Source: Bispira polyomma
Lineage: Eukaryota
Length of the DNA: 64,000 nucleotides
Direction: 5' to 3'
NCBI GenBank assembly: GCA_965649765.1
Contig: OZ287754.1
Coordinates: 37,944,001-38,008,000, forward strand
A program made the position numbers and the translations under genes. A model generated the notes under the pieces. That model was not told the origin of the DNA, did no database searches, and saw only the letters and a program-made list of their open reading frames with translations. Below are positions 22,301 to 64,000 of the stretch, in pieces; position 1 is the stretch's first letter; the number at the start of each line of letters is the position of its first letter.

Positions 22301-25300
22301 CATGTTGTATTTACATTTATGTCTAACAACATTTCGTCAATGATATTTGTTACATATTCTGTATAACCTTTTTTGAAATTGTTTTTGCAATACATTTCTT
22401 TTTGAAAATCATGCCAAGCATCCTTAGCTTTACATTTGTCATCATCAGTAACTGTTACAACCTTGTTGCTGTTTTGAAAATCATCCCTAAAATTAGCCAA
22501 AGCTATTTGAGTTGTGACTATGCTCGTCACTGACATTACCCCAGTTGGTGGGTTCTTACATCTGTAGAAATTTGTCCCAAAATCCTCATCCCATGAGGTG
22601 TAAAAACCAGAAACATGTGGCAGCTCAGACTGCACAAAAACCACAGGCATTCCTTGTGTAATGTGAGGCATGCAAAACAACCAATTAGTAGTAGAGATGG
22701 TAACTTTTACTTTTGTCTCATTTGGGGTACCATACTTGGCATTAACACTGCTGGCATTACATAAATCAGCATTAACTGTAAAATTTCTTTTATTCTCTCT
22801 TTCTAAATGTTCACCAATATTTCTGTTTCCCCAAAATACAGGGACTTCGCTGTGTGAATTATCTAGACCATTTATCTTAATATCACCTTTATTTTTAGAA
22901 AAGCCCCCAAATTTGGTGAATTGACCATAACTGTCATCTCTGTACATTCTAGTACTGGTACTCGAGTCCAGTACACTGGCCCTGATATATTGCTGAACAT
23001 TCCATTTCTTGACCCCAATAGGTTCACTATTATTAACCTTCTTGTCGATACTAACTGTTAAGCTAGGATCACACATTGCCGTTTTAGCAGTGCATGAATT
23101 TTTTATCTTTCCAAACTTGTTAGGCAATCTAATGACATTATAATTTTTAACTGCAATATGGCTATCATCAATGCTCTTTTTGTCAGTACTGATTGACAAG
23201 CTAGGTTTACACATTTCCGGTTTAACAGTGTGTACATTTTTTACATTTTCACTTTCATGTGACAATACATTCACATTAACATTTTTAGGTTTGTTTGAAG
23301 AAATATACGAATTATTACTTTCCATCTTATTTAACAATGAAAGCATATGCTTATCTGCTTTAGTTATGTCTTGGTCTTCATAATTCTGTTTTACATATAC
23401 TTCTAACTTATTCTTACTTTCACTGTTATGACAAGATGGCCCTAGTCCTGGTAGTTGGTCAATGTCCTAGTGGGTAGAAGAAGATCCTGATTCTGCCTGT
23501 TTAGCTGAGTTGGACTTATAACACTTAAATTCTGGGTGGTATACGTCTTTGTGAAGCACGGTAGCACAGTGCCAACACACATGCTTATACTGGCTGTGAT
23601 CTGCTTTATGCGAACACTTTCCGGAGTTATACAGTTTGCAAATAACCTTGGCTGTTGATCCGACGTGAGTAGATGAAGCATTGGTGGTTTTAGAATTCAC
23701 CATAGCTAGCTGTGACGCACTGAGCCTGTTGAGGGCCCACTGCGTTGTGTCCCCCCAGGACAGTCTACCTTCTTCAATCTCGGTCATGTTTAACGCCCAG
23801 GCCGTTCGGACGACCTCCCATGGTAGTGACGCGGCGTCCCTGAGGGATAGAACGACCTGCTGTATAATTTCTCTCGAGACCAGAGGGTCCGTGACCTGGA
23901 GAGCATTTGCCAACTGGCCAGATGCCCACTGAGGAAGCGACAAGTCATCATAAGGTGGTCGTTTACGCGAAGAAGTACCCGTCCACCCCTCGTTTGCCCA
24001 CCTAGTCTTCGGGTTGCTGTTCGGTATGTCTGTAGTATTAAATCTCCCCGACTTCTGTCTGAGAGCAGCCTTACCTTGGGTAAATACGGCCTGGGCCTGG
24101 AGGTTGTACTCGGCTAGCCTCTCGTTGACCCTTGCCTGTATGTCTGGCAACGTCTTCAGGATGTCTGCTTTGGGAACGATTGCATCAGTGGTGTAGTCGA
24201 CCCGGTTAAGTGAACTGGCTGTTGACGTGTGTGGCTGAGCCGTGGTACTGATCGACAGCGGTGCCTGTGGATACGAGTGACTAGGATTCGTCATGGAACC
24301 TGGAGCTGAGAGGTGTGGCTGAGCCGTGATGTCGTTACCCAACGCGACCTGGTGAGCGGAACGTGTGGGATTTAGGCAAGGAGATGCTGACTGAGCAGTC
24401 GAGTCTCTAGCTTCTACTCGATCCAACCTATGGGTGAGTAGCGCGTTAGATTCCTCAAGCCGCCTTAGTATGGTTAGCATTTCATTGGCCTGGTGTGATG
24501 ATCCGGTGGGGTTCGGAAGCCGAGATCGGGTAGATGGAGACACGTGGTCGGCCTCAGCTTGATCAAAGAGGCTACTGGGGTTAGTTATGATACTGTCGTC
24601 AATACAAGTATTCTTACCCAATTTGCTTTTCTTTGCTGTACCTTTCTTTGTTGCCTTACTGCCTTCAGTAGCTGGGGTCTTCTTAGTGTGTCTTAATTTC
24701 CTTTCAGACGTCCTCCCCATTTTACCACAATATATATATCACAAACACATAAAAAGTAGAGTATATTAAAAACAAACAATAGAATAAAAAACTAAAATAC
24801 TAAAAGCAATTGGATTCAGCAGAGCCTTCATAAACTTGGCTGTATAAAATGTATGTGTGTGTACTGCTGAATCCTTTTCCAAAATGGAAGATATTAGGAC
24901 AGGAATGCAGAATTTGGGAGGGAAGACCCCTAATTGGCTGGCCAGTTCACGGTTGGATGAATCATGCTACAGTTGTCGAATTTGCCCCTAGGGCTTAAAG
25001 TAGTAATACATTTTCCTTTGGTTGAACTGAAGTAGCAGACCCCTATTGGGTCGTGCTATGCAAAAGACGAGAGAGACAGAGATTATAAAAAGAAAATTGA
25101 CGAAAAGAAAACGCCAAGGAATTGTTTTTTTATGTGGGAAGCAAGGTCACTTTACAAAGGATTGTTTTCTTAAGAAAAAAACTTATTGGTGCTTTGTGTT
25201 CTGAACATGCAGGTAGTTCTAGTAGTTCCTCGGAAGATGAAGACAGTGTAGTTTCAGTTCAATCTTTTGAGTCACATTCTAAATCTCATGTTGGTAGGAG

Positions 25301-28300
25301 GGTTAGGCAGAACGAGAATTTGTCTTGTACTCATGACTTGGTAGCATTTGATTGTAGTTCTGGTTCCAAAGTTTTTGCCAGTAACGTTGAGCCTACCAAA
25401 AGTCTTTGTGCTTGTCCAATGCCAAATATTACTGAGGTTACATTGAATTGTGGGCACAAAATCCATGTCTTGAGTTCATGTATAAATAAGTTGCCTCCCA
25501 ATATGCCAGTTTTCAAAGGTTTTGTTGGTGACAAAGTTGTTGATGTATTGAGGGACACAGGATGTTCAGGAGTTGTAGTCAAGAAGGCACTTGTTAACCA
25601 GAAACAGTATAGTGGAAAAGTCCAGCGCTGTGCTTTCATTGATGGTTCAGTGCATACATTCCCCATAGCAGAAAATTATCTTGACACACTATACTACAAG
25701 GGTTATACTTGTGCAGTTGTGATATAGAGTCCTTTGAATCCTTTGATAGTTGAAAGTATTTCTGGTGTTGATGATAGTTCCTTAGCTTTGGTTGATTTTT
25801 CTAGATTGCAAAGAGAACAACAGTCCAAAAGTGTTTCTGTTTCTCAGGCTGTTATTACTCGTAGTCAAAAACAACATCAAACTGTTAGTAAAACTAAACC
25901 TTTGAAGGTAATGCCTAGTGAGGTTGAAGGTGTTAAAAGAAAGGACTTGATGTCTTTGCAATGTGAAGATTCGACTCTGAAGAAATGTTTTATTCAGGCA
26001 AAACAAAAGGTGAAACAGAAGAGTGGTCAAAATAACATGTCTTGGTTTAAGATTGAAGATGGCCTATTGATGAGGTATTATCAGTCTCAATAGGTTAAAT
26101 TTGGTAAAAAGATTAGTCAAGTTGTGTTGCCAAAACAACTTTGTCTTCAAGTCATGAAAATTGCTCATGGTGGTTTGTTTGATGGTCATTTTTTGATCTC
26201 GCAAGACATTAGGTCGAGTGTATGCAAATTTTGATTGGCCCGGAATCTATGGAGATGTCACTAGATTTTGCCAGTCGTGTGAGCAGACTAGTCCTGAAGT
26301 CAAGTTAACATATGAGTATGTTATGGATGTAAAAAAACGTTTGGAAGATACTCTAGAAATTGCAAAGGGTAACTTAGGTTCCAAAAGTCAGTCCTAAAAG
26401 CATTACTATGACAAGAGGGCAAAGAATAGTAAATTTTCTGTTAGAGATAAGGTCATCCTATTACTTTCAACAAGTGAGAATAAGTTACCAATGCAATGGA
26501 AGGGGCCATTTGAGGTGAAAGAAAAAATTGGTTTAAATGATAATAGAATATGTTTTGATAAATCCTAGGTTGAGTGTGAGGCAAAAACAGCAGATTGATA
26601 ATTTGTCAGATGAATTTTAGAATATTTTTACTGATGTTCTAAAAGGTACAAACTTGTTGGAACATTCTATTCCCTTGACAAGTGATAATCCAGTGTGTTG
26701 TAAACCATACCCGGTTCCCCTTTCAATGAGGCATGTTATAAAAGATGAAGTTTGCAAGATGTTGGAACTTGGTGTCATAGAGCCATTTACTGGTAACTAT
26801 GCATCACCAATTGTTCTAGTGAATAAAAAGGATGAATCCATACGTTTTTGCATTGACTATAGGAAGCTGAATTGTGTTTGTTATTTTGATCACATGCCTA
26901 CTGCTTTACCAGAATGCTTGTACTCTAAACTCTCTTCTGATTCTGTCTTTTCAAAGCTAGATTTGAGCAAGGGTTATTGGCAAATACCATTTAAACTAGA
27001 CGATCGTGATAAACCACATTCATCACTCCAGGAAATGGCATGTTCAGATTCAAAGTTGTTCCATTTGGTCTGGTTACGTCTGGTGCAAGCTGCCACAGGT
27101 TGATGCATATTTTGTAGATGATATTTTGGCTCACACTAAAGACTGGTCAGGTCATTTGATGGTGTTGAGGAAATTGTTTGAAGTTCTAAGAGAAGCAAAC
27201 CTAGCTGTGCGTCCTTCAAAGTGTATGTTTGGGTTTGAGAAGGTAGAATTTCTAGGCCATATGGTTGGTCAAAATAAAGTGAATCCTTGTGCAAAGAAGG
27301 TTAAGAAAATCAAAAAGGCAGTTCATCCACAGAATAAGAAGCAGCTCAGATCTTTTCTGGGTCTCATTGGGTACTATAGAAGGTTTATCCCAAATTTTTG
27401 CTGCTAAGGCTTCTCCACTAACAGATCTTACGACGAAGGGGTGTCCAAATATATTAGTTTGGGAGAGTATCCATCAAGAAGCTTTTGAACAGCTGAAATC
27501 TGCTTTGATGACTAAGCCAATTCTGAAATTACCTGTTGAAGACAAACAGTTTATTGTTCAAACTGATACTTCTGCTACAGTAATTGGTGAGGTATTGCTT
27601 CAGGAACATGATATAATCTTATTCCCAATATGCTATATCAGCAGAAAGTTACAGAAACAAGAAGAGCATTACTCAGCCATAGAAAAGGAGTGTCTTGTGA
27701 TTATCTGGGCAATTCAAAAATTGCAGATGTACCTGTATGGTAAAAAGTTTGTTTTACAGACAGATCACCAGCCATTGGTTTGTCTAACTACAACCAAAGT
27801 TGCAAATAGTAGACTCATGAGATGTAGCCATATCACTTCACTATCATGTCACTGAAAATGTTTTTGGTGATTAAATGAGTAGATTAGAATGTCTAAGTGT
27901 ATGGGTAAAGCATAAAACTTATGAGTGATTTGAAGATGAAAACATGGTTTTCACTTCAAAAGGGGGGCTTATGTCACAAAGTGACTTCATAAGGTTTATT
28001 CTTTAAGCTAGTTCTGCCTAGGGTCGTTATGGTTTTTGGATTCTTACTTTTTAATTCTGGTCTATGGTGTTCTGTATGAAGTCATTGTGGGTTTACTATG
28101 ATTTTGATCAGTATGGGGTGTGTGTTCATGCGTCACTGAACAAAGCATTTTAGTGTGGAATTAGTATCTTGGGTTTTAGTTTGTTTGAAGCCACACTTTT
28201 GGCAGCACATGTTTTGAAGCTCCAGACTGTTGTTTGAAGGAAACTTCCAGCATTAAAGGTATTACCTTAAGATTGTTTCAATTCACACTAACATGGTGTT

Positions 28301-31300
28301 TGATTAACATTACACACTGTTACATATATATACACAATAAATACATAGTTAACATAGTTTAACTTATGTTGTATTTGCATAATGGTTGTGTGGTGTTATG
28401 CTTAATTTCTAAGTGCTGTTTAATTATTTTCACCTGGTTTTAATGTGGGGAACTTGGTTTTCATGTTGTGATGATGCTGTTGTAATGGTGGTGTGGTTTT
28501 GATTGTATGGATCATTAATGCTGAGCATTTTCATCTCACTGGAGATATGGTAGTAGTTGAATGCTCATCAATGCTGAGGATTTTCATCTCGCTGGAGATA
28601 TTGCTGTGTTTGAATTATGGTGGTGCTGACCGTCATTAAAGGTGGAGAGTGTTATATGAAGCAAGCCACTGTGTTTGGGTTGACATTACAAGCTGGACAT
28701 TAAATTACAGTGAATTTGAACATTACATTCAGCATTGAAATGCTGCATTTTGTTGATAAATATATTTCTTTGTGTGTTTTGGGTAGACATATGTGATATG
28801 TGTTGTGTCATTTGATTGATGTGCATGTATATATATATATATGTGGTGTGGTTGTGTATATATATGTAAATGAGGGATGTGTTTGTGTTTTGAAACATGC
28901 ATATATATATATATATATTTCATGATCACTCTATTTTAAAGTGTATTATAAAGACCGGAAGTGCGCATCGACCACAAAAGCCGTCAATGCGCAATTCGTA
29001 ACCGTACTTTATCTGGGAGAATAGATCACGCATAAATAGTTCCGTCAGTAGCTACAAAAATAGTTAACAGTGAGTTGGAAATATCTCAGTGCCCTACCCA
29101 AGTAAACTTGTATATGTGGTGTAACACAGGAAAATAACAAGAAAGGAGGTTTTGGGGAGATTAGCTTTAATTTTACTATGTTATCACTAATAATTATTTA
29201 CATACTGTGTAGTAAGGGGCCACCTTAGCCCCAAGAGTTTAGGAGAAGTTAAGAGTTTAAGGTGACCTTAGCCTGAGGACAACAGGCCAAAGTGACCAAA
29301 GGGATTTTTAAAATTTAAGGGGGGGGGGCCCTAGCTTGAAAGTTAGGGCTCCCTAAGATTGAGTTTAAGGTTAAGGGTAGCCCCAGCTTGGAAGTCAGGG
29401 TTACCAAAGATTGAAATTTTTAAGGTTGAATTTAGGGGTACCCTAACTTGAAGTTAGGGTACCCTTAGAATGAGTTTAAATGTAAGAAAAATGGTAACCT
29501 TAGATTTTATTTGAGGTTGCCAAAAGAGATTTAGTAAAGATGTAAAAGGATTAAATTAGTATAAGGTAAGGTGGCCCCAAAATATTTATATTTAAGCATT
29601 ATTATATTTTATTTGTATATAATGTATGTAAATAAAGCCCCCAAAAAGGGTAAAATCGAAGTTAAAAACCATGGTACTAGCTAATAGACTAAAAACTGTG
29701 CTGCTCACTAATAAAGTCCATGAGAGTAGCAAAAACTCACTAGACCTTAAACCCCTAGCATATACAATTACCATGGCTTACAGAGAACATGCATACAGAC
29801 ATGAGCAAAATATAAATCGAGTAGCTGTTGTCTTCCAGGAGGGCAGTGCTTGCTTGCATAGAGTTCATTCCTGACTGAGCCACAAGAGATCCATGAATCC
29901 CGTATGCCTGAAACTACATGCTTACAGTTCAACATGTGATCACAAAGCTACCAAATGCACCTGCACACAACATGATGTGCAATGCATTGTAACGTTATAC
30001 TAGCAACCACACCGGTTGCGAAATACAAACATTTTACAAGTCCAGTCCTCGTTGTAACGAGGAACAACATTATTAGTTATACTTTACATGCTACTATAAC
30101 AACAAAAAGGATGCCACTTCACATACTGTATACGTATAAATCATGCTGCCTGACGCAGGATATTTGACAACATTATCAATTTGATATACAACAAAGGGAA
30201 CACCCTGAAGACAATAAAGTAACGTACAATTGATAACAACAAAAGGAGACGCAACCTCAGCAGCAAGCAGCTACCTACAAGAAAGTGTTGGCCCCTAAGG
30301 GCCCTGGTGTTACCCAGAAAATATGGGAGATAAGTCACCTGAGGCCCCAGAAGGCCCCCAAGGGCGAGGAACTGTGAAGGCCAGCAGTAATGCATAACTC
30401 GTGGGCCCACAGCCCCGAGCCCCCACCCCCCTGCGCCAAGGTGTAAAGTGAGACTTCAGGAACCCCAGGGACTGCATGCAGCACTCCAGGGACGGACGCA
30501 TAGCTGAAAACTACCGAGGAAGTAGTAGGGGCAAGTGGGTGGGTAATGTAAAATATTAAAGATGGCGTTGTTGCCTACATGACTTCAAAAGTATAAGTGA
30601 GGATTCTAGCTAAAAAGCGGGAAACAGAGGTTAATTAGTACACAAATAGCCAATTAGGAGAGGGTTTAAAGGGCATGAACCCAAGGAGAGAAAATACTAG
30701 TAGCACTGAACTTGCTATCCCCTACGGTGCTACCCCGCACAGTGCCCTACCCAAGTAAACTTGTATATGTGGTGTAACACAGGAAAATAACAAGAAAGGA
30801 GGTTTTGGGGAGATTAGCTTTAATTTTACTATGTTATCACTAATAATTATTTACATACTGTGTAGTAAGGGGCCACCTTAGCCCCAAGAGTTTAGGAGAA
30901 GTTAAGAGTTTAAGGTGACCTTAGCCTGAGGACAACAGGCCAAAGTGACCAAAGGGATTTTTAAAATTTAAGGGGGGGGGCCCTAGCTTGAAAGTTAGGG
31001 CTCCCTAAGATTGAGTTTAAGGTTAAGGGTAGCCCCAACTTGGAAGTCAGGGTTACCAAAGATTGAAATTTTTAAGGTTGAATTTAGGGGTACCCTAACT
31101 TGAAGTTAGGGTACCCTTAGAATGAGTTTAAATTTAAGAAAAATGGTAACCTTAGATTTTATTTGAGGTTGCCAAAAGAGATTTAGTAAAGATGTAAAAG
31201 GATTAAATTAGTATAAGGTAAGGTGGCCCCAAAATATTTATATTTAAGCATTATTATATTTTATTTGTATATAATGTATGTAAATAAAGCCCCAAAGCCC

Positions 31301-34300
31301 AACTAGGAAGTAGTAGAAGGGGCAAGGAGGGCCTTGAAGGTGAGGGCGACTTGGTCAGATGCATTGTGATTCTGTACAATATATTTCCACACACAATCAG
31401 ACGTCCAAGTGCCATGGCTCTGGATATCTTGAATTGGGACATTATTGTTGAAGGCCCAGGTGGCACCTGAACGCCTGAAGGTGTGGAAAGAAATGTTAGA
31501 TTGCTGGAGGCCAAGACGTCTCAAAATTTGGGTGAGATTTTGCCTAGCTTGGGTGTCAATCATTGGAGACCATTTATGGTGTTTTTTAAACTGAAAGAGA
31601 GGAGAATTTTTGTGTCCAGGAGTAATAGCCAGCAAGGCCCTTGTGGCAGCCACCGGACAGAGACTAGAGCCACTTAGGCTCGGTATTTTAATAACTTTTG
31701 CTACATTTTTTGACTGCATTGTTTTAGACCACTTTATTATGAGGTGGAGGCCAGGGGAGGCAAAAAGTACGTCCCCCCGGGCCAATTGGACTAGTGGAGA
31801 GAATTGAGAGACAGCATGTGGAAGTAAGTTAGATATTCTAAGAAAAGAAAAGAAGGCAATGAGGTACAGAGCCTTGAAGATCTGCCCCATGTACATGCTG
31901 TCACAGATTTGAGTAATTTGGAGCAAGAGGGGAATGTCAATAATAGCGTTAATTTTAGCCCTGAAGGGGCTATTGAGTGTAAGAGCTTTTTGGTAATACT
32001 TAATTCTAGGATCTGCAAATGCAGAGACGTCAAGGCCATAGAGGGCCAATTTAGCTTTAACTGCCGAAAGGTAGTTTGCAATGGAGGGGGAAGAGACCTG
32101 ATTAACCACTAATACTTCTAAGAAAGCCAATATAATAAGGGGGGAGATATTTTGAGGCCTGACCTGAGCAAAACTACAATAGGCCAAGAATATCCTAAAC
32201 ATATTTGTATAGGCCCTTTCAGTGGCTGGTCTAAAGGCCTGATGGGCTCTGTATGAGGCTTGTGTAGCAATCTTTCTTAGCTTGGAAGGTACATCTGCAA
32301 TTAGATAGACCAATCTATTTCTAACATTGTGTCTTTTACTGTTACCCATTTGGGATTCGGTACCAGTTGTAGTAACTTGTCCTTATTACTGGCCGTGATC
32401 TGCCATCTGGAGAGGAGATCAGCCACTGTATTAAGTCTACCTAAAATGTGAATGGTTTTGAGACTGATGTCATGGGAGGCTACGGCCATGAAGATGTTTC
32501 TGGCAATAGCTGCCAAAGTGAGGTCTTTAGTTTTGCCTGAATTTAGGATAGTGACCACGGCAGCATTGTCGCATTGCAATATTAGCCTCTTACCTGCCCA
32601 GGCTGACTTCCATAGCCTAATGGCAACTAGGATGTTTAACATTTCCAGATGAACTATCGTGAAATCTAGGTAGCCTAGAGGAATTTGGAATTGGTATACT
32701 TCATCATTACAACGGCCTCCCAACCCTTGGAGGCACGCATCCAACTGAATACAATCGGTAGTGGGTTTGTGTTCAAAGAAGGCTTTTCCATTAAATGTTG
32801 GTAAAAAATTTTTAAACCAATTTACATCCTGATGAAACTCAGGTGTGAGTTTTACTTTTTGATCCGAGCCTACAGATCTTAGGACGTCAAGCATTCGGTT
32901 TAAGAAAGCACGTGAAACTCGAACACATTTGGATACATATAACAATTTACCTAGCAGTGACTGCAACTCCCTCTTACTGCAGCAGTGTCTTAATTGCCAG
33001 TCTTGCACAAGTGTGTTTATTTCTAGTAGCTTTTTATCTGGCAATGAGATTGTCAAGTCATTTGTGTTAACTAAGACCCCCAGACACGTTACTGACGTGC
33101 TGGGGTGAACAAGTTTCTTGTGACTAATCGCAAAGCCTAGTTCCTGGAGTAAGTTTAGCAATATATCAAATGAACGTTTACTTTCTATGACGTCACCATA
33201 GCCGATTACGTCGTCGATATAATTGGTGACGTCATGTCCGTGACGTTTCATGATGTACCTGACGGCGTCACTTAATCGCTGAAAAATTGCGCTCCCGTGC
33301 CGAAAACCAAATGGGAGGCAAGAGTCGACATAGTATTTGTCTAATTTCAAGCCTAGTAGATTGTAATCGGCTGGATCCATTTTCACGTGACGAAATGCCC
33401 GACTTACGTCAATTTTATATAGGAGCGTTCCACGTCCCATGCGACAGATTTTGTTTGTAATTGTGTCAATTGTGGGAAGGGTTAATGCAAACGCAGTACC
33501 GAGATACTTATCCTTGACTACAGCCGAGTTCACAGAGTTGCCATGAGGAAAGCTTAAATCTATGATAACGCGCCTGTGTGCGGCACCTGGTTTTTCCCTA
33601 GTCATAAAGGGAGAAATATGGAGGTTTTTTATGGGGGAGTTGTTTATCCCAGTAGTCAGTCAAGTACCTTTCCCATACATCTGGGTTCAACTCAGATTTC
33701 AATTGAACTTGTGCCCCCATATAATTTGGGTAGTTGTCCTTCTTAATGTGAGTGTGTAATTCTAACAGAGACTTATCCGACTTTACTCGTTTATCCGTTT
33801 GGGGAACTCGGAGGTCATTTAGCGGAATAAACCCATACTTATCTGTAGTTTGAGTATCCCATTGCTGGAACTGAGGCTGGTTGGAAGCCTGTTTTATAAG
33901 TTCCCTGTTTTTCGATTTAGTTTGTAGCTCTAGGTCATATTTGTCTGATTTTATTCCCCCAGTAGCTCGAGAGAGTCTTTTAAAACCTTGACCTTGGTTA
34001 CAAGTATCTGGTAAATGTGTGACAGAGTTGTCACTAGTGTGCATATAATGGTCATTGTCACTCAACGGGGAAAACCTATTGTGAGTGGAAACGGGCCATT
34101 TGCCCTGAATGTCTAATTTTGTGATTTCCAGCTTTTGGCCAAATTGATCACCTTTTGTTGGAGGGAGTTTACCCATTTTTGACATTACATTATGCCTCTG
34201 TACACTTGTGAAAGGGGAAGCATCTTTTGTGAAAGTTTTAACACTCACTCTGTGGCCCCGTTCATGCTTTGTGGACCCCTCTGAAATTTGGTTGTTATTT

Positions 34301-37300
34301 ACACATGGTGAACATTTAACGTGGTGACTTTGCCACCTCTGAGTGACATTGGCACTTTGTACAGAAAACTTTATGGCAGCAGACCTGGAGGGAGCCTTTC
34401 TTTTAACCACATCAGCATAAGATCTATTTACAAATTTGGCCCAATCTGCCCTCCAATGTGTAGTGCCAGTATTACATTTAAGACTATTATACACGGTTCT
34501 ACTAGGACAACCTTTAGAAATATTTACAACTTTTTGTGCAAGTTTTTTCTTGACCACCTCTTGTGTGGAGGAAACATGGGGTGGCACTGCATCACTGCAG
34601 TGCCTTACTCGTTTTTTAACGGATATTTTTTACAGTCTTTTGCAGGGTGGGGGTAAGACCTCCCATTTTGAAAGCATTGGTTACACACATGACTATATGA
34701 CACACCTTTGAATTCGTGATCCCCTTTTTGGGGGCAAGTACCCCTCTGGAAGTACCTACATGGGATGGACTTCTCATGACTTTTCCTGGTGTTGGTTTGA
34801 TAATTACTACTTGCAGTGTGGCTGACAACCCTTTGGGCATGAGCCCGTCTAATCCTGTCCAACTTGTGGGCATCTCCCCAGGTTACCTTACCCTCTTCCA
34901 TTTTACAGAGTACAACGGCATGGCTAGCCTTAGCCGAAGTCCAGGAAAATTCATGAGCGTCCTCCATGAGGTCAGTGAGATAGTCCAACATTTGGTTTTT
35001 AACGTCTAAATTACTTTCATCTCTAGCTATGCTGGCAAAACCAGAGACCCACTGGGCCATTGACGCGTCATACGTAACTCGTGTTTTGTTTTGTCCCCCT
35101 AGTATAACGTTCTGAGGCCAAGCCACCTTATTCTTCACCCACAGAGTGTCGGGACCCCCTCTTTGAGATTTTGACGTACCTGACTCGTTAATGGACACCA
35201 ATTCCTTAAGACGTGAATCCACTGCAGTCTGTAGGGAGTCGGATGTACGCAGTGTGTGTAGCGTCGGGACCAGTAGCTCAGAAGTGGTTTGGTCCGCCTG
35301 TCTAGGTTGGGCTGCACTCCCCGGGCTCGACGCCGTCAAAGCCTGGGCTCCATGTGAACTGCGATAAACTTGCTGCTCAACTTGGGTCATACGCCCACTT
35401 AATGCTTTGAGTTCAGTCAAAATTTGTAAATTTACGTCGGCAGCAGTTACACCATCGCCAGTCACAGAGTTCTGCTGGGAGGTTCCCACACCGGTATGCA
35501 TTTTACAGTTTTCGTCAACGGGCTTAACATGACTAGTATCACACTTGTGACAGTAATATTGTTTCCTTGGGGCCATAGCCTCTGAATAATATAAGAACTC
35601 GTGGCTTTGATACCTGCAACTATACTAAAGGAACTGTAACGCTATAATCTGATTTGAATTATGTAATCAGGCAAATAGCCGTGAATTGGATGCAATATAA
35701 TTGATTTGACCACGTTCCTTTACCACCGCTCAAACGAGCATATAATCGCAGGACTCAAAGTAGAGTAAAACACAGGAATCCAGCACAAGCACTGCAGATC
35801 AGTTCCTCCTTAGTGTGTAGCACCACTTAGTGAATCATTTGTTGCATTTCTTGTTTCCATCACACAGATAATAAAATCAGTGAAGTAAAAATAAAACACA
35901 TAAAAGTAAAATAATGTAAAATATTAAAGATGGCGTTGTTGCCTACATGACTTCAAAAGTATAAGTGAGGATTCTAGCTAAAAAGCGGGAAACAGAGGTT
36001 AATTAGTACACAAATAGCCAATTAGGAGAGGGTTTAAAGGGCATGAACCCAAGGAGAGAAAATACTAGTAGCACTGAACTTGCTATCACCTACGGTGCTA
36101 CCCCGCATATTATTTGCTTTAAAATATATTATTGTCAGTCTTTATAATAGAAATAAAGTACACGGGCTTGTACTTTATTGGCGAATCAAGGACAGCCTTC
36201 CAGCATAATGGACTCGGGCCTACCGGCCCTCGTATATTCGCCAATAAAGTACTCGCCCTTGAACTTTATTTCTACATTAATTCAGAGTGTGTATCATTTA
36301 CTGTAGGAGCCTCATTCTGGCCCTGTGACAAAGACCCATGAGCTAGCCTGAATATATCATCTTGGTACATTATTGGTACTACCATCTGATGTAGTATTGA
36401 CCAGTTCTCAGATGTAAGGACATTTTGCAGCCTCCACTTTTGCATAAGCACACCATTTTTGTGTGCCTAAAATTATGTGAAGGACTTCATATTGAAACCA
36501 TTTTAGATAGGAAACTTAGATAGTTTTAAAACATATTCCAAAGATGCATTGCCAATGGCCATCATTCAATTCTATATTTAAATCTTCATGCCATATTCTT
36601 TTCGATTCCATTTGAAGCAGAGATAATCAGTTCTTTCCAGAACTCATTTGATGTCATATTACTTTAATATTTACACCATTGTATCCCCAATTTAGAAATT
36701 TTTGAAACTTAAGAGTTTTCTCAAAAAAGATAAGTCAGTAAGAGGATTTCGTTTTTAAAATTCTTTTCATCCAAGACAGTTTTAAAGAGTAAATGAAATT
36801 TTCCAAATTAACCATTCTCAGTCCGCCTTCTTGATAATCTTGTGTAAGGTAGATACGTTTGATTTTGTCTGGTTTATCTCCCCACAGGAAGAAAAACAAT
36901 AGTTTGTTAATGTCTTAAATAAATTTTTTATTTGGTGATGAAATAACTGAAAACAGATGATTAAATTTAGAAAGAATGAAAGTTTTGATAATTGTGATTT
37001 TTCCAAGAGGAGTCAAGTTCCTTTTTTTCTAATTAATTGGCAGTTTCTTTGACCTTTCTAAAGCAATTGTGTAGTTTGTATTACCTATTTTTGCTAAATC
37101 CACTGAAAATATTATTCCCAACAGGTCAAAATGAGTAGTACCCCAATCCAATTTGAATTCTTCTAGATCAACTGTTATTCCCATACTTTCAATATTTTGA
37201 TTAATTAGATAGACTAAAATTTGACCACATATAAGAAACAGATATGGGACCATGGGGTCCTCTTTCAATTTTTATGAATTCAGACTTTATGCCAACTTGT

Positions 37301-56450: not shown

Positions 56451-58349
56451 GTTACATGGGGCAATTTTGAGACTGATAAAGGTAAGTAAACACAAATGTA
56501 TGTGTCAATAAAACATTCCATTCAGTAATATTTAGGGAAAAAACAAGAAGACTGTTGGTAGACACATAATGTATGTGTAAATATTTTTGCAGAAGTTTAC
56601 TTTTGTGCCTCTGATTAGGCGAAAATTAAATCCTCTTGAAATTAGCCAATGAAAATCTTTGCACAAATTTTTAAGAAAATTGTAAATCAGAGTGGCAGTT
56701 AATAGTACATGTTGACAAGGTTCTATTGGCGATAGCAGATAAGAATCCTTACATTTTGGTATTTTTAGCATGTGTGACGGTGTTATTCAATAACAGGTCA
56801 GTATTTTAATGGTTAAACCCAGCTAAAACATTTGTCTAGGTGTTTTGTTGGTGTAATGGTTAGGTAGATTGAGACAAACATGCTTAAAAATTTTAATGAT
56901 AGTATCTTCCAATTATGACATTTAAAGAAAAATGGTAACTTGTAAAAACAAATTTATTCAACGATATAGAGTTGGTAATAAGCTTCAGACTTTATTGAGA
57001 CATCCCAAACTTGATATTTCTTTGTACATATTACACAGGTTTACCAGTTAACAGTAAGGCATTAACATATCACACCCTGTGTCAGTCTGCACACAGCGTT
57101 ACCACCCGAGTGTCATGTTAGATACAAGTCTACTTTCTATTTCTCTTTTTGACCCACATCTGTGATGTCATACCCCATGTATGAATGCAGTTCACTTTAT
57201 ATTTATCATGTTACTCTCTGTACGCAGTACGTATTGAATGCTACAACACCAAAGTATTACTGACTTATTGCTGAAGTAAGATTTTTAAGTAAACTAGCAC
57301 TTTTAACTACTTGCTATTCTTTTTGTAATTCTAATAAAATGAACATACACAAAACAGACTATTGTATGTTTAGTCAAAATTAATCAGTCAATATTTTATA
57401 TTGAATCAGGCTTTTGTAAAGAAACACAGTGTTGATCATGATCATTATAACCTAAAAATGACAATTCTACTTAGTCATCCCATAAAATAATCCCACATAT
57501 TATTTACCAGGGGCTCTCAATGTATCGCAGTATATTAATGTTTAATTTTGGCTTATTCTAAATTTGGCAAATAATTACAAGTAGTAGTTTCAGACTTAGT
57601 AACATAACAGATACACATGTAATATATTTTATACATTTACATATGTACACCCTATAATAAGAATGTCTACTTTATGCATATGCTGCTGTTTTGTCCCTAC
57701 ATGTTTCTGTACAGAACTTGTCATGAAAGCTTTCTTTGAAAGACCCTTTTATTTAAACATATTACATTCTGCTTAATGTAAACTGTATGCCATAGACTTG
57801 TACAGGTAGTTTAGCCAAATGTAGTGTATCATCATTGCTATAATAAGGATGTGTAAATGCATTGTGGCTGTTTCAACAAGTAGAAGTTATCACATTATAT
57901 AGTATACCACACCAATCATTAAGCATACAGTAACTGAATTGAAAATTATTATTGGCTGATTTGATCTTTTGTTAATTTTTTTCAAATGAGATTAAATACA
58001 AAAAAAACCCATGGAAATAAATTACAATTTATCTATAATACTACATAACTACATTGTAATGATATTTCCAAACAAAATAGCTCGGTATCAACAATTGTGC
58101 TTTTATACCATTATATTATTACATTTGATTGATTTATTGCTGGAACATCTGATTTTACTTACTGACATTAAGCATTACTTTGACATAAAAGATTGACTGA
58201 AAATAACCTCTGATAGTTAGAATATTTAGCACATGAAATATTAACTACATAATACATTAGCAGCTTTTTTCAGACATTTTTGACATAAAAATCTGTTGTA
58301 CAAGGTGAAAACCTTGGCCAGCTGATAAACCTTTCATAGACTAGTGATT

Positions 58350-61055
58350 TTATCCCCAGATTCTAGAAGTGTCTGAGTCATCACGCCATAACCGCTTGTC
58401 TAGGTTTGGAATCACATAATAGGGTTTGGGAGCATATCTTTTGCCCCAGGTCCTAGAACCGCCGTCACTCCAGGAGCGTTTTAATGTATCGATGATATAA
58501 TCGGTATCCCTCTTACCCCAGACACGATTAGCATCGTCCCCATCCCAGCCCCGCTTAGTATCTACTGACCTTTTGTTAATTGATCGTTTTCCGAACTGAC
58601 GCCCAGATGTAAACCCCCAATTCCTCTTCTCAGGTTCATATAAATCATATACACCATAGCTTTGACCGCCGGGATAGTCCCATTCAGCCTGATCCTGCCC
58701 ATACTCCTCCATTGCTCTCTTTCCCCAGTACCTTGATGTGGAACCCCATGACCTTTTATCCAAACCATTATCTAAGACTACTGGTACATCGACACTTCTT
58801 TTACCCCAGAGTCTGCGCATTTTCCCTGACCAGCCTCTTTTATCACTATTCATTTCCTCCAACACAGCTTCGACATCTCTCTTACCCCACTGTCTTGTGT
58901 TACCAGCAACATCCCATTTATTTTCGTTGTCTTCATTCAGAGATCGTTTCTCTAATTGGCTCTTATTGATATCTGCCGACTCTTTTTTCAAATCACCGGC
59001 ATCCTTCTTATCAGCCTCACCATTATCTGATTCAGACACCCCATTTTCACTTAAGTTCTCATCATCACGTTTTCCGAACATTCGTGAGCCCTTAGATCCC
59101 CATTTTTTATCTGCATCTATTTCATTTTCCCTTTTCCCAAACATTCTTGAACTTTGATCTCCCCATTTTTTATCTGCATCTATTTCATTTTCCCTTTTCC
59201 CAAACATTCTTGAACTTTGATCTCCCCATTTTTTATCTTCACCTATTGCGTCTTCCCTTTTCCCAAACATCCTTGAACTTTGACCTCCCCATTTTTTATC
59301 TGCACCTACGTCATCTTTCCTTTTCCCAAACATCCTTGAACTTTGACCTCCCCATTTTTTATCTACATCAATTTCATCTTCCCTTTTCCCAAACATTCGA
59401 GAACTTTGACCTCCCCATTTCTTGTCAGCATCAATTTCATCTTCCCTTTTACCAAACATCCTTGAACTTTGACCACCCCACTTTTTATCAGTATCTATAC
59501 CATCCTCCCTTTTCCCAAACATCCTTGAACTTTGACCGCCCCACTTTTTATCAGTATCTATACCATCCTCCCTTTTCCCAAACATCCTAGAACTTTGACC
59601 ACCCCACTTTTTATCAGTAGCTATACCATCCTCCCTTTTCCCAAACATCCTTGAACTTTGACCGCCCCACTTTTTATCAGTATCTATACCCTCCTCCCTT
59701 TTCCCAAACATCCTTGAACTTTGACCGCCCCACTTTTTATCAATATCTATACCCTCCTTCCTTTTCCCAAACATCCTAGAACTTTGACCGCCCCACTTTT
59801 TATCAGTATCTATGCCTTCCTGCCTTTTCCCAAACATCCTTGAACTTTGACCACCCCACTTTTTATCAGTATCTATACCCTCCTCCCTTTTCCCAAACAT
59901 CCTAGAACTTTGACCACCCCACTTTTTATCAGTATCTATTCCATCCTCCCTTTTCCCAAACATCCTTGAACTCTGACCTCCCCATTTTTTATCTGCATCA
60001 ATTTCACCTTCCCTTTTTCCAAACATTCTTGAACTTTGACCTCCCCATTTCTTATCAGCATCAATTTCATCTTCCCTTTTACCAAACATTCTTGAACTTT
60101 GACTGCCCCACTTTTTATCAGTATCTATACCCTCCTCCCTTTTCCCAAACATCCTAGAACTTTGACCACCCCACTTTTTATCAGTATCTATACCCTCCTC
60201 CCTTTTCCCAAACATCCTTGAACTTTGACCGCCCCACTTTTTATCAGTATCTATACCCTCCTCCCTTTTCCCAAACATCCTTGAACTTTGACCGCCCCAC
60301 TTTTTATCAGTATCTATACCCTCCTCCCTTTTCCCAAACATCCTTGAACTTTGACCGCCCCACTTTTTATTAGTATCTATACCATCCTCTCTTTTCCCAA
60401 ACATCCTAGAACTTTGACCGCCCCACTTTTTATCAGTATCTATACCATCCTCCCTTTTCCCAAACATCCTTGAACTTTGACCGCCCCACTTTTTATCAGT
60501 ATCTATACCATCCTCCCTTTTCCCAAACATCCTAGAACTTTGACCGCCCCACTTTTTATCAGTATCTATACCCTCCTCCCTTTTCCCAAACATCCTTGAA
60601 CTTTGACCTCCCCATTTTTTATCTGCATCAATTTCGTCTTCCCTTTTCCCAAACATTCGGGAATTTTGTCCACCCCATCGCTTTTCCTCATCCTGAATCT
60701 GATCGTCAACATCTCTCTTGCCCCATTGTCTAAATTTTTGATTACTCCATTGATGGCTACGCTTTTCTTCTGTTTCTGGTGTAAGTTTATTGTCCGTTAC
60801 TTTCATACTTGACATTTTATCACTTGTGTCTGCCTCTTCTATGGTCTTACCATTTTGTGCTGCTGTCTTGTTGTTGGAGTCTATAATTTTCTCTTGAGTG
60901 TCTTCACGGTCTTTCTTGAGTTCGGGTGCCGATATAACATTTTCCTTACTTTTGTCTGCTGTCTGTACTGCTTTCAAACACATTACATGATCAGCTACAT
61001 ATAGCGCTATCACCACACAAGGTAGCCAATATCTATGGATTAGGCCACACTTCAT
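58350..61055 (-). CDS. Neuropeptide precursor, myoinhibitory peptide / allatostatin-B (Wamide) family-like, 901 aa, about 34 predicted amidated peptides
   Basis: Signal-like N-terminus MKCGLIHRYWLPCVVIALYVADHVMC. Peptides are bounded by KR/KK and GKR: SHQWSNQKFRQWa, 26 x W-X7-Fa, ..WDVAGNTRQWa, GWSGKMRRLWa, SWGSTSRYWa (W-X6-W), NWGFTSGRQFa, GWDGDDANRVWa, SWSDGGSRTWa, LWRDDSDTSRIWa (G then stop); spacers are acidic. Confidence 0.9.
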   Translation of the reverse strand: MKCGLIHRYWLPCVVIALYVADHVMCLKAVQTADKSKENVISAPELKKDREDTQEKIIDSNNKTAAQNGKTIEEADTSDKMSSMKVTDNKLTPETEEKRSHQWSNQKFRQWGKRDVDDQIQDEEKRWGGQNSRMFGKREDEIDADKKWGGQSSRMFGKREEGIDTDKKWGGQSSRMFGKREDGIDTDKKWGGQSSRMFGKREDGIDTDKKWGGQSSRMFGKREDGIDTNKKWGGQSSRMFGKREEGIDTDKKWGGQSSRMFGKREEGIDTDKKWGGQSSRMFGKREEGIDTDKKWGGQSSRMFGKREEGIDTDKKWGSQSSRMFGKREDEIDADKKWGGQSSRMFGKREGEIDADKKWGGQSSRMFGKREDGIDTDKKWGGQSSRMFGKREEGIDTDKKWGGQSSRMFGKRQEGIDTDKKWGGQSSRMFGKRKEGIDIDKKWGGQSSRMFGKREEGIDTDKKWGGQSSRMFGKREDGIATDKKWGGQSSRMFGKREDGIDTDKKWGGQSSRMFGKREDGIDTDKKWGGQSSRMFGKREDEIDADKKWGGQSSRMFGKREDEIDVDKKWGGQSSRMFGKRKDDVGADKKWGGQSSRMFGKREDAIGEDKKWGDQSSRMFGKRENEIDADKKWGDQSSRMFGKRENEIDADKKWGSKGSRMFGKRDDENLSENGVSESDNGEADKKDAGDLKKESADINKSQLEKRSLNEDNENKWDVAGNTRQWGKRDVEAVLEEMNSDKRGWSGKMRRLWGKRSVDVPVVLDNGLDKRSWGSTSRYWGKRAMEEYGQDQAEWDYPGGQSYGVYDLYEPEKRNWGFTSGRQFGKRSINKRSVDTKRGWDGDDANRVWGKRDTDYIIDTLKRSWSDGGSRTWGKRYAPKPYYVIPNLDKRLWRDDSDTSRIWG
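59066..60703 (-). repeat. Coding tandem array, 26 x 63 bp
   Basis: The first and last RMF units are 1575 nt (25 x 63) apart; each unit is spacer-KK-WGGQSSRMF-GKR. Confidence 0.95.
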
Positions 61056-61166
61056 TTTGTACAAGCTACGCAAAGAGGAAATGGAGCACTTCCCCCTCTG
61101 GGAATTAAACCTTCTTGACGTCTTCTGGGATGACACTCTTCTTGTTGTCCAATTTCCTTCTTAGTC

Positions 61167-61186
61167 CTGAAAAATACACAAAACAG
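61167..61186 (-). promoter_or_regulatory. Splice acceptor for the neuropeptide coding exon (5' UTR intron)
   Basis: ctgttttgtgtatttttcag| lies 111 nt upstream of the ATG. Confidence 0.65.
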
Positions 61187-64000
61187 GGTTATTGTAATCA
61201 TTTATTTAGATGGTTTCGCTGTTTTTTGTTATTATTTGGTGGGTAAGTTTTGGTGTAACTCTAGATACTCTTGACACATGCCATTACAAAAAAATTATCT
61301 TTCTTTATCATAAAAAAATATCATTAGTGTTTCAAGCAAATAAACGTCCCCTTTCTGTCACACATGGAATGGTTATGGGGTTATTGTTATTTTGTAATTT
61401 CTCTGCTGGAAGCAATTATTCATTTCTGTGGAGGCTAATACATAAATGCCATTATAAAACTAAGCACAGAAATATGTGAAACTTTATATAAGGTTAGCTG
61501 TATCAACAATTGGAAACATGCACTGAATATGAAGTATCACTGTTTACTGTTGAGCATACTTGAACAGTCTTTACTTTGAATGAATAGGTTGTAATATATT
61601 TTTTTCGCCAAGAAAAATGCTTTGTCAAGAATATTATATTCCACACACAAAAATGTATAATTAGCAAAGAAAATAGTAAAATTCACAAATTGTATAATTA
61701 ATAACCATAACATGAATAAGTATTGTTAGACTTGCAAACAGGCATTTTAAATTAATGGTCAACATGTTCTGATCAATAAATTGTTATTTTAAAATTTACA
61801 TTATCTTTGTTTAAATATTATATCACTGACACATGATACAATTTTTAATTTATTAGAAAGAGTCTTGTAACTGAAGCTTTTTTTAAAGCTACAGCACTAA
61901 AATAGCGAAACCACATCAATCTTTGGCCAACGACTCTAAATAGTGGAATAAAGTTGGCACAATCAAAGGGTTTTTATATGTTGTTGTTTTCGGCAATATA
62001 TCAGCTTTATGTTATCATTCTGCACAGTTATAGTTGACAAAAACACCAATAAATAAAACCAGGTGCTATTAAAATGGCTGCACGTAATGAAATACTCATT
62101 ACTGCCCGTCTTTGATGAAACAAGTTATTACAGACATGGCTCATAGTTGAGAACATTTATGCTCCCTTATTGAGGCCAAGAATTGGCTTTCTGGTGATAT
62201 TGAGTCTGAACTGGTAAACATGTCATGCACCAATAACCACTAATTAGTACCTTATATAGTGTCCCTCTGCACCCTCTCTCTCTCGATATATATATATATC
62301 AGGCTTGAGCAGAGAATGTGGCTTAAATAAAATGACATTTTTAGTGTGTTTATTGTGCAAAAGCGGGAACAATTAGCTGGTTTTATTGTCATAGATTTAT
62401 ACTCAGCTCTAAATACAATTAGCCATCAACTCAGTGTAAATGGTTTGGCCTATTCAACTGGTTTGCATACTATAAAAGTCCACCTGAATAACCCACCACT
62501 ACAATCCAATCTCCCATCCGCTTTCATATGGCTATTAACTCTTTTTTCATTGTCCAGGTTGCTCAATTACTTTTTTCCAGAACACCACTTTGCTGGTGTA
62601 TACATTGAACTACGAGTCTTAATTCCGTGCCCTTTGAAAATCTATTCTCACCTCAGTCTATTGTTTGGCATACAAAAAAAGAAATATACTGATGAACTTC
62701 TGGTCACTGAATGGTGACAAATGGGGCTTGTTTTATTGAGCTGTTGCATTTAAAAGGGTATACACACTGAAACTTAAGGCTTTCTCAGACAGTTTCATGG
62801 CTGTTGCATGCTCAGACTTACTTTTGGTCCCACATTATGTGTTGAATTTATTGAATGAATTTGTGCCATGAATGAATTGTCTAAAAACATAGTTACAGTT
62901 CTAAGGCTAAAAATTTAACCATTTTGACCCCAACGACATTTTTTCTGTAAATGGTTACAGATAGCTGGAGTTACTAAAACACGGACCACAGAATACTTCT
63001 GGCATTTAATAACGGTCTCACATATAAATTGGTAAACAGGGTATTACTGCTATACTATCAATTTTCTATTGCAGGGAACTTAAGGAACAAAAATACTATT
63101 TTTTTGGGTGTCGACTACTTGCTGACAGACATTCATTCTTGTTGACAACCTAGGAGTTGAAAGAGTTGCATGTAAAAGCGGTATGTCTGATATGTTCTTA
63201 CTCATGCTAATGCTATTCATATTCAAATTTGTGCATTCACCTCCTTTTGTCTGTTATTTAAGGCACCAACCAATTAAACATTCTTGACTGCCTAAGGATA
63301 GCAAACCAGTAACTGCCTTTCCCTTAACTGAAGAAACTTACACATAAAAGCTATAGGTATTGAATTGGACACTAATGTAGACTTTTGAGGTGTGAACTAA
63401 TGTTACATTTACTGCCTTGATGGACAACATGGTTGAGAGCTTAGCTGGATTATTTTTACTAACACCATGCAGCAGTGAGTTACATATAGACATTCTAATC
63501 GTTGTCCTGGTAAGAACGGTCTCCTAATATCACAACAGAAGTCAATACTACTAGCAAAACACATGTTCTGTCATCCTGAACATTTAGCCCAAGTCGGTTT
63601 GACATTCTAAATAAACACAATTTATACAAACCGTCCCGGTCTGACCTCTCATTACAAAGGACAGGTGACTCGTAAGGCAACGGCCTAACTACTGTTAACT
63701 ACTGCTTTGCATGTGCCCACCAGTACACTTACTACAGAAGCTATTATGTTTCATTATGCAAGGAGTGCTTACTTGAGTAAAAACTGGCAGTGATTGAAGT
63801 ATGCTGTCATGGATGTAAGCAAGGGCTTGAGTTAAGGCTTTCTATTTGTATAAATGTCACCATACTTGTGACCACAAAGGTATGACCACACTATTGCATT
63901 AGGGTGGGTGTAACTGGGAGTTACAAGATCCACTTGGTGGAGCAGTGTACTTTTGAGGCAGAACAGTACATTCTCTGATTTAATATGTTGTAAGCAATGT

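Follow-up and report, generated by a model that had tools for sequence, protein, structure and literature searches.

Can a neuropeptide gene exchange the residue that gives its family its name and still serve the same signalling system? The question is raised by a gene on the minus strand of a 64,000-nucleotide (nt) stretch of the Bispira polyomma genome (contig OZ287754.1, positions 37,944,001 to 38,008,000; hereafter the window, numbered from its first letter). The gene, at 58350 to 61055, encodes a precursor of 901 amino acids (aa) that would release many short peptides, most of them ending in Phe where the MIP/allatostatin-B family has Trp. A first-pass annotation, made from the letters of the window and a list of its open frames, had assigned the precursor to that family and had called it dominated by an amplified W-X7-F-amide peptide.

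The Wamide superfamily takes its name from the C-terminal Trp-amide, which is indispensable at both an annelid MIP G protein-coupled receptor (GPCR) and an ion-channel receptor, as judged by Ala replacements (PMC7270403; 10.1101/261990; here and below, papers are cited for the portions accessible to us). The pathway matters to the animal, as it governs the settlement of larvae as well as feeding in marine worms (PMC11027379; PMC4307165; PMC7737342). We consider it probable that the locus is a single-copy annelid MIP/allatostatin-B (Wamide-family) precursor gene, that a single exon holds all of its coding sequence and that Phe-amides are its main product, acting within MIP signalling. The family is a known one and no new kind of system is involved; Phe-amide as the predicted dominant product, maintained by selection, is what is new. 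The gene is thereby a natural experiment in how a key ligand residue changes without loss of the system, whether because receptors tolerate the change, because they co-evolve with it or because a new receptor is captured.

Phe-ending peptides dominate the precursor

Two parses of the translation both yielded 34 peptides flanked by Gly and basic residues, 27 ending in Phe and seven in Trp. Splitting at dibasic sites resolves the 27 Phe-Gly peptides into 21 copies of WGGQSSRMFG, two of WGDQSSRMFG and one each of WGGQNSRMFG, WGSQSSRMFG, WGSKGSRMFG and NWGFTSGRQFG, so that their C-terminal pair is Met-Phe in 26 cases and Gln-Phe in one. The seven Trp-Gly peptides, with spacings of 6–9 residues, are SHQWSNQKFRQW, (..NK)WDVAGNTRQW, GWSGKMRRLW, SWGSTSRYW, GWDGDDANRVW, SWSDGGSRTW and LWRDDSDTSRIW. 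Every peptide is followed by Gly and KR, or by Gly and the stop codon, and the basic site upstream is KK in 25 of the 34 and KR in nine. From the first Trp to the last residue, seven residues intervene in 30 peptides, six in one, eight in two and nine in one. The first-pass counts (27 Phe-amides of about 34, 21 of them WGGQSSRMF, seven Trp-amides) were exactly reproduced by this splitting, and the first-pass coordinates agree with the open reading frame. Its description of a dominant W-X7-F-amide peptide is also correct: 27/34 peptides end in Phe, compared to 0/123 in the relatives introduced below.

In MIP peptides, by definition, 5–8 residues lie between an N-terminal Trp and a C-terminal Trp-amide (PMC7737342; PMC7270403). 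Seven of the 34 peptides have both Trp residues; in the remaining 27 the first Trp and the X7 spacing are retained, and Phe is the last residue. The precursor qualifies as a MIP precursor, and its major product lies outside the letter of the Trp...Trp-amide definition. The calculated [M+H]+ values are 1054.489 for WGGQSSRMF-NH2, 1112.494 for WGDQSSRMF-NH2 and 1198.575 for NWGFTSGRQF-NH2, while the N-extended form EEGIDTDKKWGGQSSRMF-NH2 would have a calculated [M+H]+ of 2069.971.

The layout of the gene is as follows, in the direction of the minus strand.

58350..61136, minus strand: open reading frame, 928 codons counted from GTG
61167..61170, minus strand: putative splice acceptor, a pyrimidine run and then cag (sequence reading)
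61055-61053, minus strand: start codon, the first Met of the open reading frame
60978..61055, minus strand: signal-peptide-like N-terminus, residues 1–26, MKCGLIHRYWLPCVVIALYVADHVMC (translation and hydropathy; predicted cleavage point)
60759..60977, minus strand: acidic, polar N-terminal propeptide, residues 27–99, with KR at its end (translation)
60720..60758, minus strand: first Trp-amide-type peptide, SHQWSNQKFRQW, plus Gly (translation)
59067..60677, minus strand: tandem array of 26 units (Tandem Repeats Finder and unit alignment)
58887..58943, minus strand: peptide SLNEDNENKWDVAGNTRQW, with the core WDVAGNTRQW after a single Lys (translation)
58806..58835, minus strand: peptide GWSGKMRRLW, with an internal RR (translation)
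58725..58751, minus strand: peptide SWGSTSRYW (translation)
58593..58622, minus strand: second, independent Phe-type peptide NWGFTSGRQF, Phe codon TTC (codon reading and alignment)
58563..58592, minus strand: landmark GKRSINKRSV, common to relatives, followed by exactly three peptides
58353..58562, minus strand: last three Trp-amide-type peptides, GWDGDDANRVW, SWSDGGSRTW and LWRDDSDTSRIW (translation)
58350..58352, minus strand: stop codon TAA, end of the open reading frame
58133..58138, minus strand: AATAAA, candidate polyadenylation signal about 215 nt past the stop (sequence reading)

The first Met is codon 28 of the frame, at 61055, and gives the 901-aa precursor. Its N-terminus has a hydrophobic core with a mean hydropathy window maximum of 2.5–2.9 over residues 10–13, and its C-terminal peptide, LWRDDSDTSRIW, has its Gly directly before the stop. 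We found no frameshift or stop across the 2.7 kb of the frame, and a letter count found no N in the 64-kb window. Chance does not account for an open frame of 928 codons at a G+C content of about 36–40%. Some 110 nt separate the splice-acceptor-like cag from the Met downstream of it. Use of this site would place the start of the coding exon at 61166 and a 5′ untranslated region (UTR) at 61166 to 61056, and the entire coding sequence would sit in one exon behind a spliced 5′ UTR.

The relatives of the precursor are Trp-ending precursors

We compared the full protein with 1.84 billion cluster representatives in an exhaustive phmmer search (cut-off E <= 0.001). There were 31 matches at the cut-off, six at E <= 1e-10 and none at E <= 1e-30, meaning that the collection holds neither the protein itself nor a close relative. 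Fourteen of the 31 are secreted multi-copy W-X-W-Gly-Lys-Arg precursors, the best E-values being 3.5e-19 (P0002), 2.4e-16 (P0003), 1.5e-12 (P0005) and 2.1e-11 (P0006). The other 17 are unrelated repeat proteins (adhesin-like, TPR, coiled-coil) and were dropped from all counts. The non-repetitive C-terminal 240 aa alone matched P0002 at 1.8e-16 and P0038 at 2.3e-8, and BLASTP aligned the precursor collinearly with P0003 at 6e-18. Adding P0038, from the C-terminal search, to the 14 phmmer matches gave 15 relatives with 123 peptides for comparison. In these relatives 121/123 peptides end in Trp and 0/123 in Phe, and X7 is the commonest spacing, found in 84/123 peptides compared to 30/34 in the query.

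The 3′ end of the gene offers a positional comparison. The landmark [W/F]GKRS..KRS[VI] was found in 4/15 relatives examined, and is followed by three peptides in the query, P0003, P0009 and P0006 and by four in P0022. The peptide at the landmark is AWNNNMRVW, AWDKNMRVW or TWGGSGREW in relatives and NWGFTSGRQF in the query, and the BLASTP alignment places NWGFTSGRQF opposite AWN-NNMRVW of P0003. Consequently, Phe has replaced Trp at the end of a positionally equivalent peptide. The array units themselves resemble the W..SR[LMTV]W style of P0026 (WDGKTSRMW), except in the last residue.

The relatives are unnamed, and none of ten clusters looked up is a named one (0/10). We tied them to MIP because many matches carry the MRVW-Gly ending, MRVW being an annelid MIP motif (PMC7737342), and because their peptides are like the Platynereis MIPs, which include AWNKNSMRVWamide, AWGDNNMRVWamide and GWNGNSMRVWamide (PMC4307165). 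Membership of the precursor in the MIP/allatostatin-B (Wamide) family is supported, and the first-pass assignment holds on three grounds, namely the W-X-W-Gly-KR relatives, the collinear 3′ end and the matching X7 spacing. The type of these relatives and the spacing also fit an annelid source.

Other searches gave leads or artefacts. In the Atlas feature search, residues 662–901 scored 0.78 with tachykinin clusters and 0.76 with a 'Prothoracicostatic peptide' cluster in third place; all of these scores are too low to count as more than leads. The word-indexed whole-protein search returned no match among 8000 candidates scored, probably owing to its length window and to repeat-dominated words. 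The one Pfam family assigned was OspE, which comprises lipoproteins of Borrelia (E 5.6e-29; the 100.9 bits exceed a cutoff of 25, and the best stretch spans 33 residues). We rejected it as a repeat artefact because weak matches were summed over the 26 repeats of an animal secreted precursor; tandem peptide arrays can thus falsely clear a curated Pfam threshold.

The array combines old and young units under constraint

Tandem Repeats Finder reported a repeat at 59098-60677 with a period of 63, 25.1 copies, 91% matches, 0 indels and a score of 2271. Unit alignment resolved 26 units, all in perfect 21-codon register; in each, a W-G-x-x-x-S-R-M-F peptide is followed by Gly-Lys-Arg and then by an acidic spacer of nine residues with KK at its end. 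Their peptides are 21 WGGQSSRMF, two WGDQSSRMF and one each of WGGQNSRMF, WGSQSSRMF and WGSKGSRMF, encoded by 20 distinct DNA sequences among the 26 units.

A distance matrix separates the units into layers. Sixteen young units (2–9 and 12–19) differ from one another at 0–7 of 63 bases, while nine older units (1, 10, 11 and 20–25) differ among themselves at 4–12 bases, units 24 and 25 being identical, and differ from the young units at 9–16. Unit 26 differs from every other unit at 24–30 of 63 bases and still encodes W-G-x-x-x-S-R-M-F-G-K-R. The mean difference between units drops to 5.7 at a lag of ten units, compared to 8.5 at lag 8, which fits duplication of a block of about ten units.

The Phe codon is intact in 26/26 units (TTT in 25, TTC in unit 26), and two substitutions separate TGG from TTY. 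Across units, the ratio of nonsynonymous to synonymous differences (pN/pS) is 0.034–0.061 in the peptide plus GKR and 0.23 in the spacers, with pS at 0.32–0.45; as the units share ancestry and are not independent samples, the contrast is indicative and carries no formal test. It indicates a much stronger constraint on the peptide part than on the spacers. Because the W, S-R-M-F and G-K-R residues stayed fixed while synonymous changes piled up, the Phe-amide form looks old and functional and would have been amplified afterwards. The first-pass annotation had also proposed ligand diversification within one precursor, with possibly altered receptor preference; the constraint on the Phe-peptide relative to its spacers supports a real diversification, and the altered preference enters our model as a proposal.

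A model for the origin and use of the Phe-amides

By the standard neuropeptide pathway, the signal peptide would route the 901-aa precursor into the secretory pathway, prohormone convertases would cleave at KR and KK sites, a carboxypeptidase would remove the basic residues, and the exposed Gly would be converted to a C-terminal amide. Each precursor would then yield about 27 Phe-amide peptides, including 21 WGGQSSRMF-NH2, together with seven classical Trp-amide MIPs. The first-pass annotation had noted KK upstream of most repeats and had suggested that longer acidic forms might be released. The predominance of KK stands (25/34), while the suggestion drawn from it is weakened by the relatives, where KK immediately precedes the first Trp region in 18/123 peptides (6/9 in P0027 and 4/13 in P0006). 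KK thus appears to be a normal cleavage site in the family and is expected to be cut; N-extended acidic forms are possible, and we do not favour them.

As the sequence comparisons show, one MIP-type unit gained Phe for the family-defining C-terminal Trp (TGG to TTY). Amplification followed in several steps, which comprise the old units that have diverged, a recent burst that produced 16 nearly identical units and the duplication of a block of about ten units, with purifying selection on the peptide sequence throughout. A second, positionally conserved peptide underwent the same Trp-to-Phe change. The Phe-amides would now be the main bioactive product. Their targets would be the MIP GPCR, the MIP-gated DEG/ENaC channel described in Platynereis, or both, and their receptor preference or potency would have shifted away from that of the seven Trp-amides. 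We prefer MIP-receptor ligands with shifted potency because the change is from one aromatic residue to another and the rest of the peptide is unchanged. On this account, Phe-amide took the place of Trp-amide twice in this annelid lineage, and one unit rose to 26 copies while purifying selection acted on it.

Support from genomic DNA runs

We compared the locus with contigs from three DNA runs of two samples, where the flanks at 57500-59126 and 60606-62000 are identical to the assembly with 0 other letters. The runs are genomic, as their contigs continue through the non-coding flanks, and among the three runs with the locus none is on record as RNA. The array is present in the short-read contigs only as short pieces, since the contigs break inside it, and several unit junctions are matched with 0 other letters by short contigs from the two samples.

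Runs X2 and X3, which come from one sample, also contain a contig that matches the gene up to 60954 and then continues as unlike sequence, and another that passes from unlike sequence into the array (array positions 59255 and 60578). A second copy of 60640-61240 was not found in the assembly.

Alternative explanations

Several alternatives would account for a Phe-dominated array in a MIP-like precursor. The Phe-amides may have left the MIP receptors for a receptor of their own, a neofunctionalisation in which a new peptide-receptor pair arose inside a MIP precursor, the seven Trp-amides keep the ancestral pathway and one precursor feeds two signalling systems. We regard this as rather unlikely. 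The new receptor may have come from duplication of the MIP GPCR, from elsewhere in the protostome W/Y/F-amide receptor expansion or from the FaNaC/MGIC-type channels. In favour of such a switch, receptors activated by RFamides stand beside the MIP receptor in a protostome expansion (PMC8557429), replacing the C-terminal Trp with Ala abolishes activation of MIP receptors (PMC7270403; 10.1101/261990), the strong constraint on the Phe-peptide implies that some receptor reads it, and the second Trp-to-Phe change at a conserved position suggests a lineage-wide shift. However, Phe is a conservative aromatic replacement, and the substitutions in the accessible parts of those two papers are Trp to Ala only, with none from Trp to Phe. 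The first Trp, the X7 spacing and the S-R-M before the end also stay MIP-like, as in WDGKTSRMW of P0026.

It is improbable that the Phe-amide array is inert filler or a recent neutral expansion, with only the seven Trp-amides mattering. The 0–7 base differences among sixteen units do make part of the array young, and the search for runs with the locus returned no RNA run. Yet the pN/pS of 0.03–0.06 in the peptide part against 0.23 in the spacers, the retention of W, S-R-M-F and G-K-R in the old units (9–16 differences) and in unit 26 (24–30), the Phe codon preserved in all 26 units and a 2.7-kb frame free of frameshifts and stops all argue for a functional peptide. We judge it very improbable that the gene is an unexpressed pseudogene or its array an assembly artefact, a reading that draws on the same outcome of the run search and on short-read contigs that cannot span the array. 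The frame is intact and bears a signature of selection, the distinctness of 20/26 units argues against assembler stutter, and unit junctions recur without other letters in contigs from two samples. It is hardly credible that the gene is a member of some other F-amide family (SALMFamide-like, FxFamide-like or FMRFamide-related) whose resemblance to MIP is convergent. The repeat piece alone gave only two weak matches, a starfish protein with ...FGKR repeats (P0040, E 4.7e-3) and a protein with F-x-F/Y-GKR repeats (P0039, E 4.6e-4). The P0040 repeats (...SALPF-, ...SGLPF-, ...SALMF-) are of what we take to be the SALMFamide type. Both matches are marginal and driven by GKR and acidic spacers; the query ends in MF and not RF, has Arg at position −3 where the P0040 repeats have L or F, carries in the same frame seven W-X-W-Gly peptides and is collinear with Wamide precursors at far better E-values. 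SALMFamide membership was rejected, as S-S-R-M-F has Arg, and no hydrophobic L or F, two residues ahead of its final Phe, and so was FMRFamide/RFamide membership, as the C-terminal Arg-Phe-amide is absent (26 peptides end in Met-Phe, one in Gln-Phe).

Several points nevertheless weigh against the reading that we favour, a MIP precursor whose Phe-amides act within MIP signalling. At both Platynereis MIP receptors, Ala in place of the C-terminal Trp abolishes activity (10.1101/261990; PMC7270403), and by analogy a Phe-amide may be a poor ligand of the ancestral receptors. The unnamed relatives are connected with MIP by published peptide motifs, no named orthologue being among them, while transcription, splicing, processing and amidation are all predicted from the sequence. 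The copy number of the array comes from the assembly alone, and the contig ends in one sample may hint at an insertion allele or a partial extra 5′ copy that is absent from the assembly. The shared ancestry of the units, noted above, adds to these points.

The locus within its genome

Searches of the animal's own 1.035-Gb assembly show that the neuropeptide gene is single copy, and C-terminal and repeat queries found no separate canonical MIP gene. Between 40 and 64 kb of the window there is no further long frame, except for repeat-generated frames opposite the array. Minus-strand frames of 300–975 aa at 19000-36300 of the window are unrelated to the neuropeptide gene.

Elsewhere in the genome lies a second multi-copy precursor with paired Trp residues (L013:1087-3642, plus strand; G000:C3:30192586-30195141), an 851-aa frame with a signal peptide. 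It has about 35 W-x6-W-[M/I/L] units, such as SWSDSGMSW[M/I], each directly followed by KR or KK without Gly, and its peptides are therefore presumably non-amidated. The unit core resembles SWSDGGSRTW of the window gene, and the peptide strings were not found in the literature search. The N-terminal Cys-containing domain of about 180 aa weakly resembles Dioxygenase_C: the Pfam match (E 0.0023) falls short of the cutoff, and the Atlas score of 0.82 counts only as a lead. From its predicted units, L013 is possibly a MIP paralogue that lost amidation; if so, the MIP-like gene and the L013 precursor together would suggest that MIP-type ligands radiated specifically in this lineage.

The remaining matches of the repeat piece in this genome were rejected. 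Those on C2 near 16.89 Mb contain many stops and represent a satellite, an unrelated repeat; those on C1 and C12 are open-frame minisatellites, likewise unrelated. L014:1291-2442 (plus strand) is a minisatellite whose 383-aa frame consists of a 21-residue unit that weakly matches the repeat piece, and L015:1216-2036 (both strands) is a minisatellite with several overlapping frames of 190–270 aa; both look non-coding.

Novelty of the Phe-amide expansion

We searched the literature, sequence collections and metagenomes for the amplified unit. The literature search found neither the peptide strings nor wording on Phe-ending MIPs, although supplementary peptide lists outside the search could hold exceptions. 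In whole-protein and repeat-piece searches, no protein in the two large collections searched carries the unit, and a metagenome scan with the repeat piece gave 34 pattern matches, of which none was confirmed. A degenerate DNA pattern for W-G-x3-S-R-M-F-G-K-R hit five loci, which we rejected as single chance matches in unrelated DNA of 50–63% G+C. Within the literature and sequence collections searched, there was accordingly no described orthologue with the same Phe-amide expansion.

Comparison with known systems

The precursor shares its plan with the Platynereis dumerilii MIP precursor, which is likewise repetitive and secreted, with short peptides flanked by Gly and dibasic sites that run from an N-terminal Trp over X7 to an aromatic C-terminus (PMC4307165). 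The Platynereis precursor is described with 11 peptides, all Trp-amides, whereas the 901-aa query has 34, of which 27 end in Phe and one unit is amplified 26-fold. The eleven Platynereis MIPs activate both a GPCR (MAG) and a DEG/ENaC channel (MGIC), with differing preferences (10.1101/261990; PMC7270403). The MIP precursor of Urechis unicinctus is another annelid MIP gene with multiple similar copies, and is described as a 475-aa protein with 11–13 predicted peptides, a MRVWamide motif and a tie to larval settlement (PMC7737342; PMC11027379). Its peptides are described there as MRVWamides, with no Phe-amide unit, and its copy number is about one-third of that of the query.

Nearest in peptide style are the unnamed precursors P0026, P0006 and P0038, with WDGKTSRMW, WNEHNSRLW and WDTGISRTW and with KK-W sites. 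This group also has a peptide with an internal dibasic pair, LWYSGYKRKW, to be compared with GWSGKMRRLW in the query. Unlike the query, these precursors carry 7–13 peptides that all end in Trp.

Further afield, molluscan WWamide/allatostatin B and arthropod MIP/prothoracicostatic peptides belong to the same Wamide superfamily as the query (PMC7270403; PMC5996578). The residues between the two Trp number 4–5 in molluscs and 6–7 in insects (PMC5996578). In the accessible parts of the cited literature these peptides end in Trp-amide (PMC7270403; PMC5996578), whereas those of the query mostly end in Phe. Published MIP precursors are described with 10–13 peptides (PMC11027379; PMC5996578; PMC7737342), and P0037, among the unnamed relatives, has 19 W..W-GKR peptides in 807 aa. 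With 34 peptides in 901 aa, the Bispira precursor is the largest of those compared; its size alone is no new principle.

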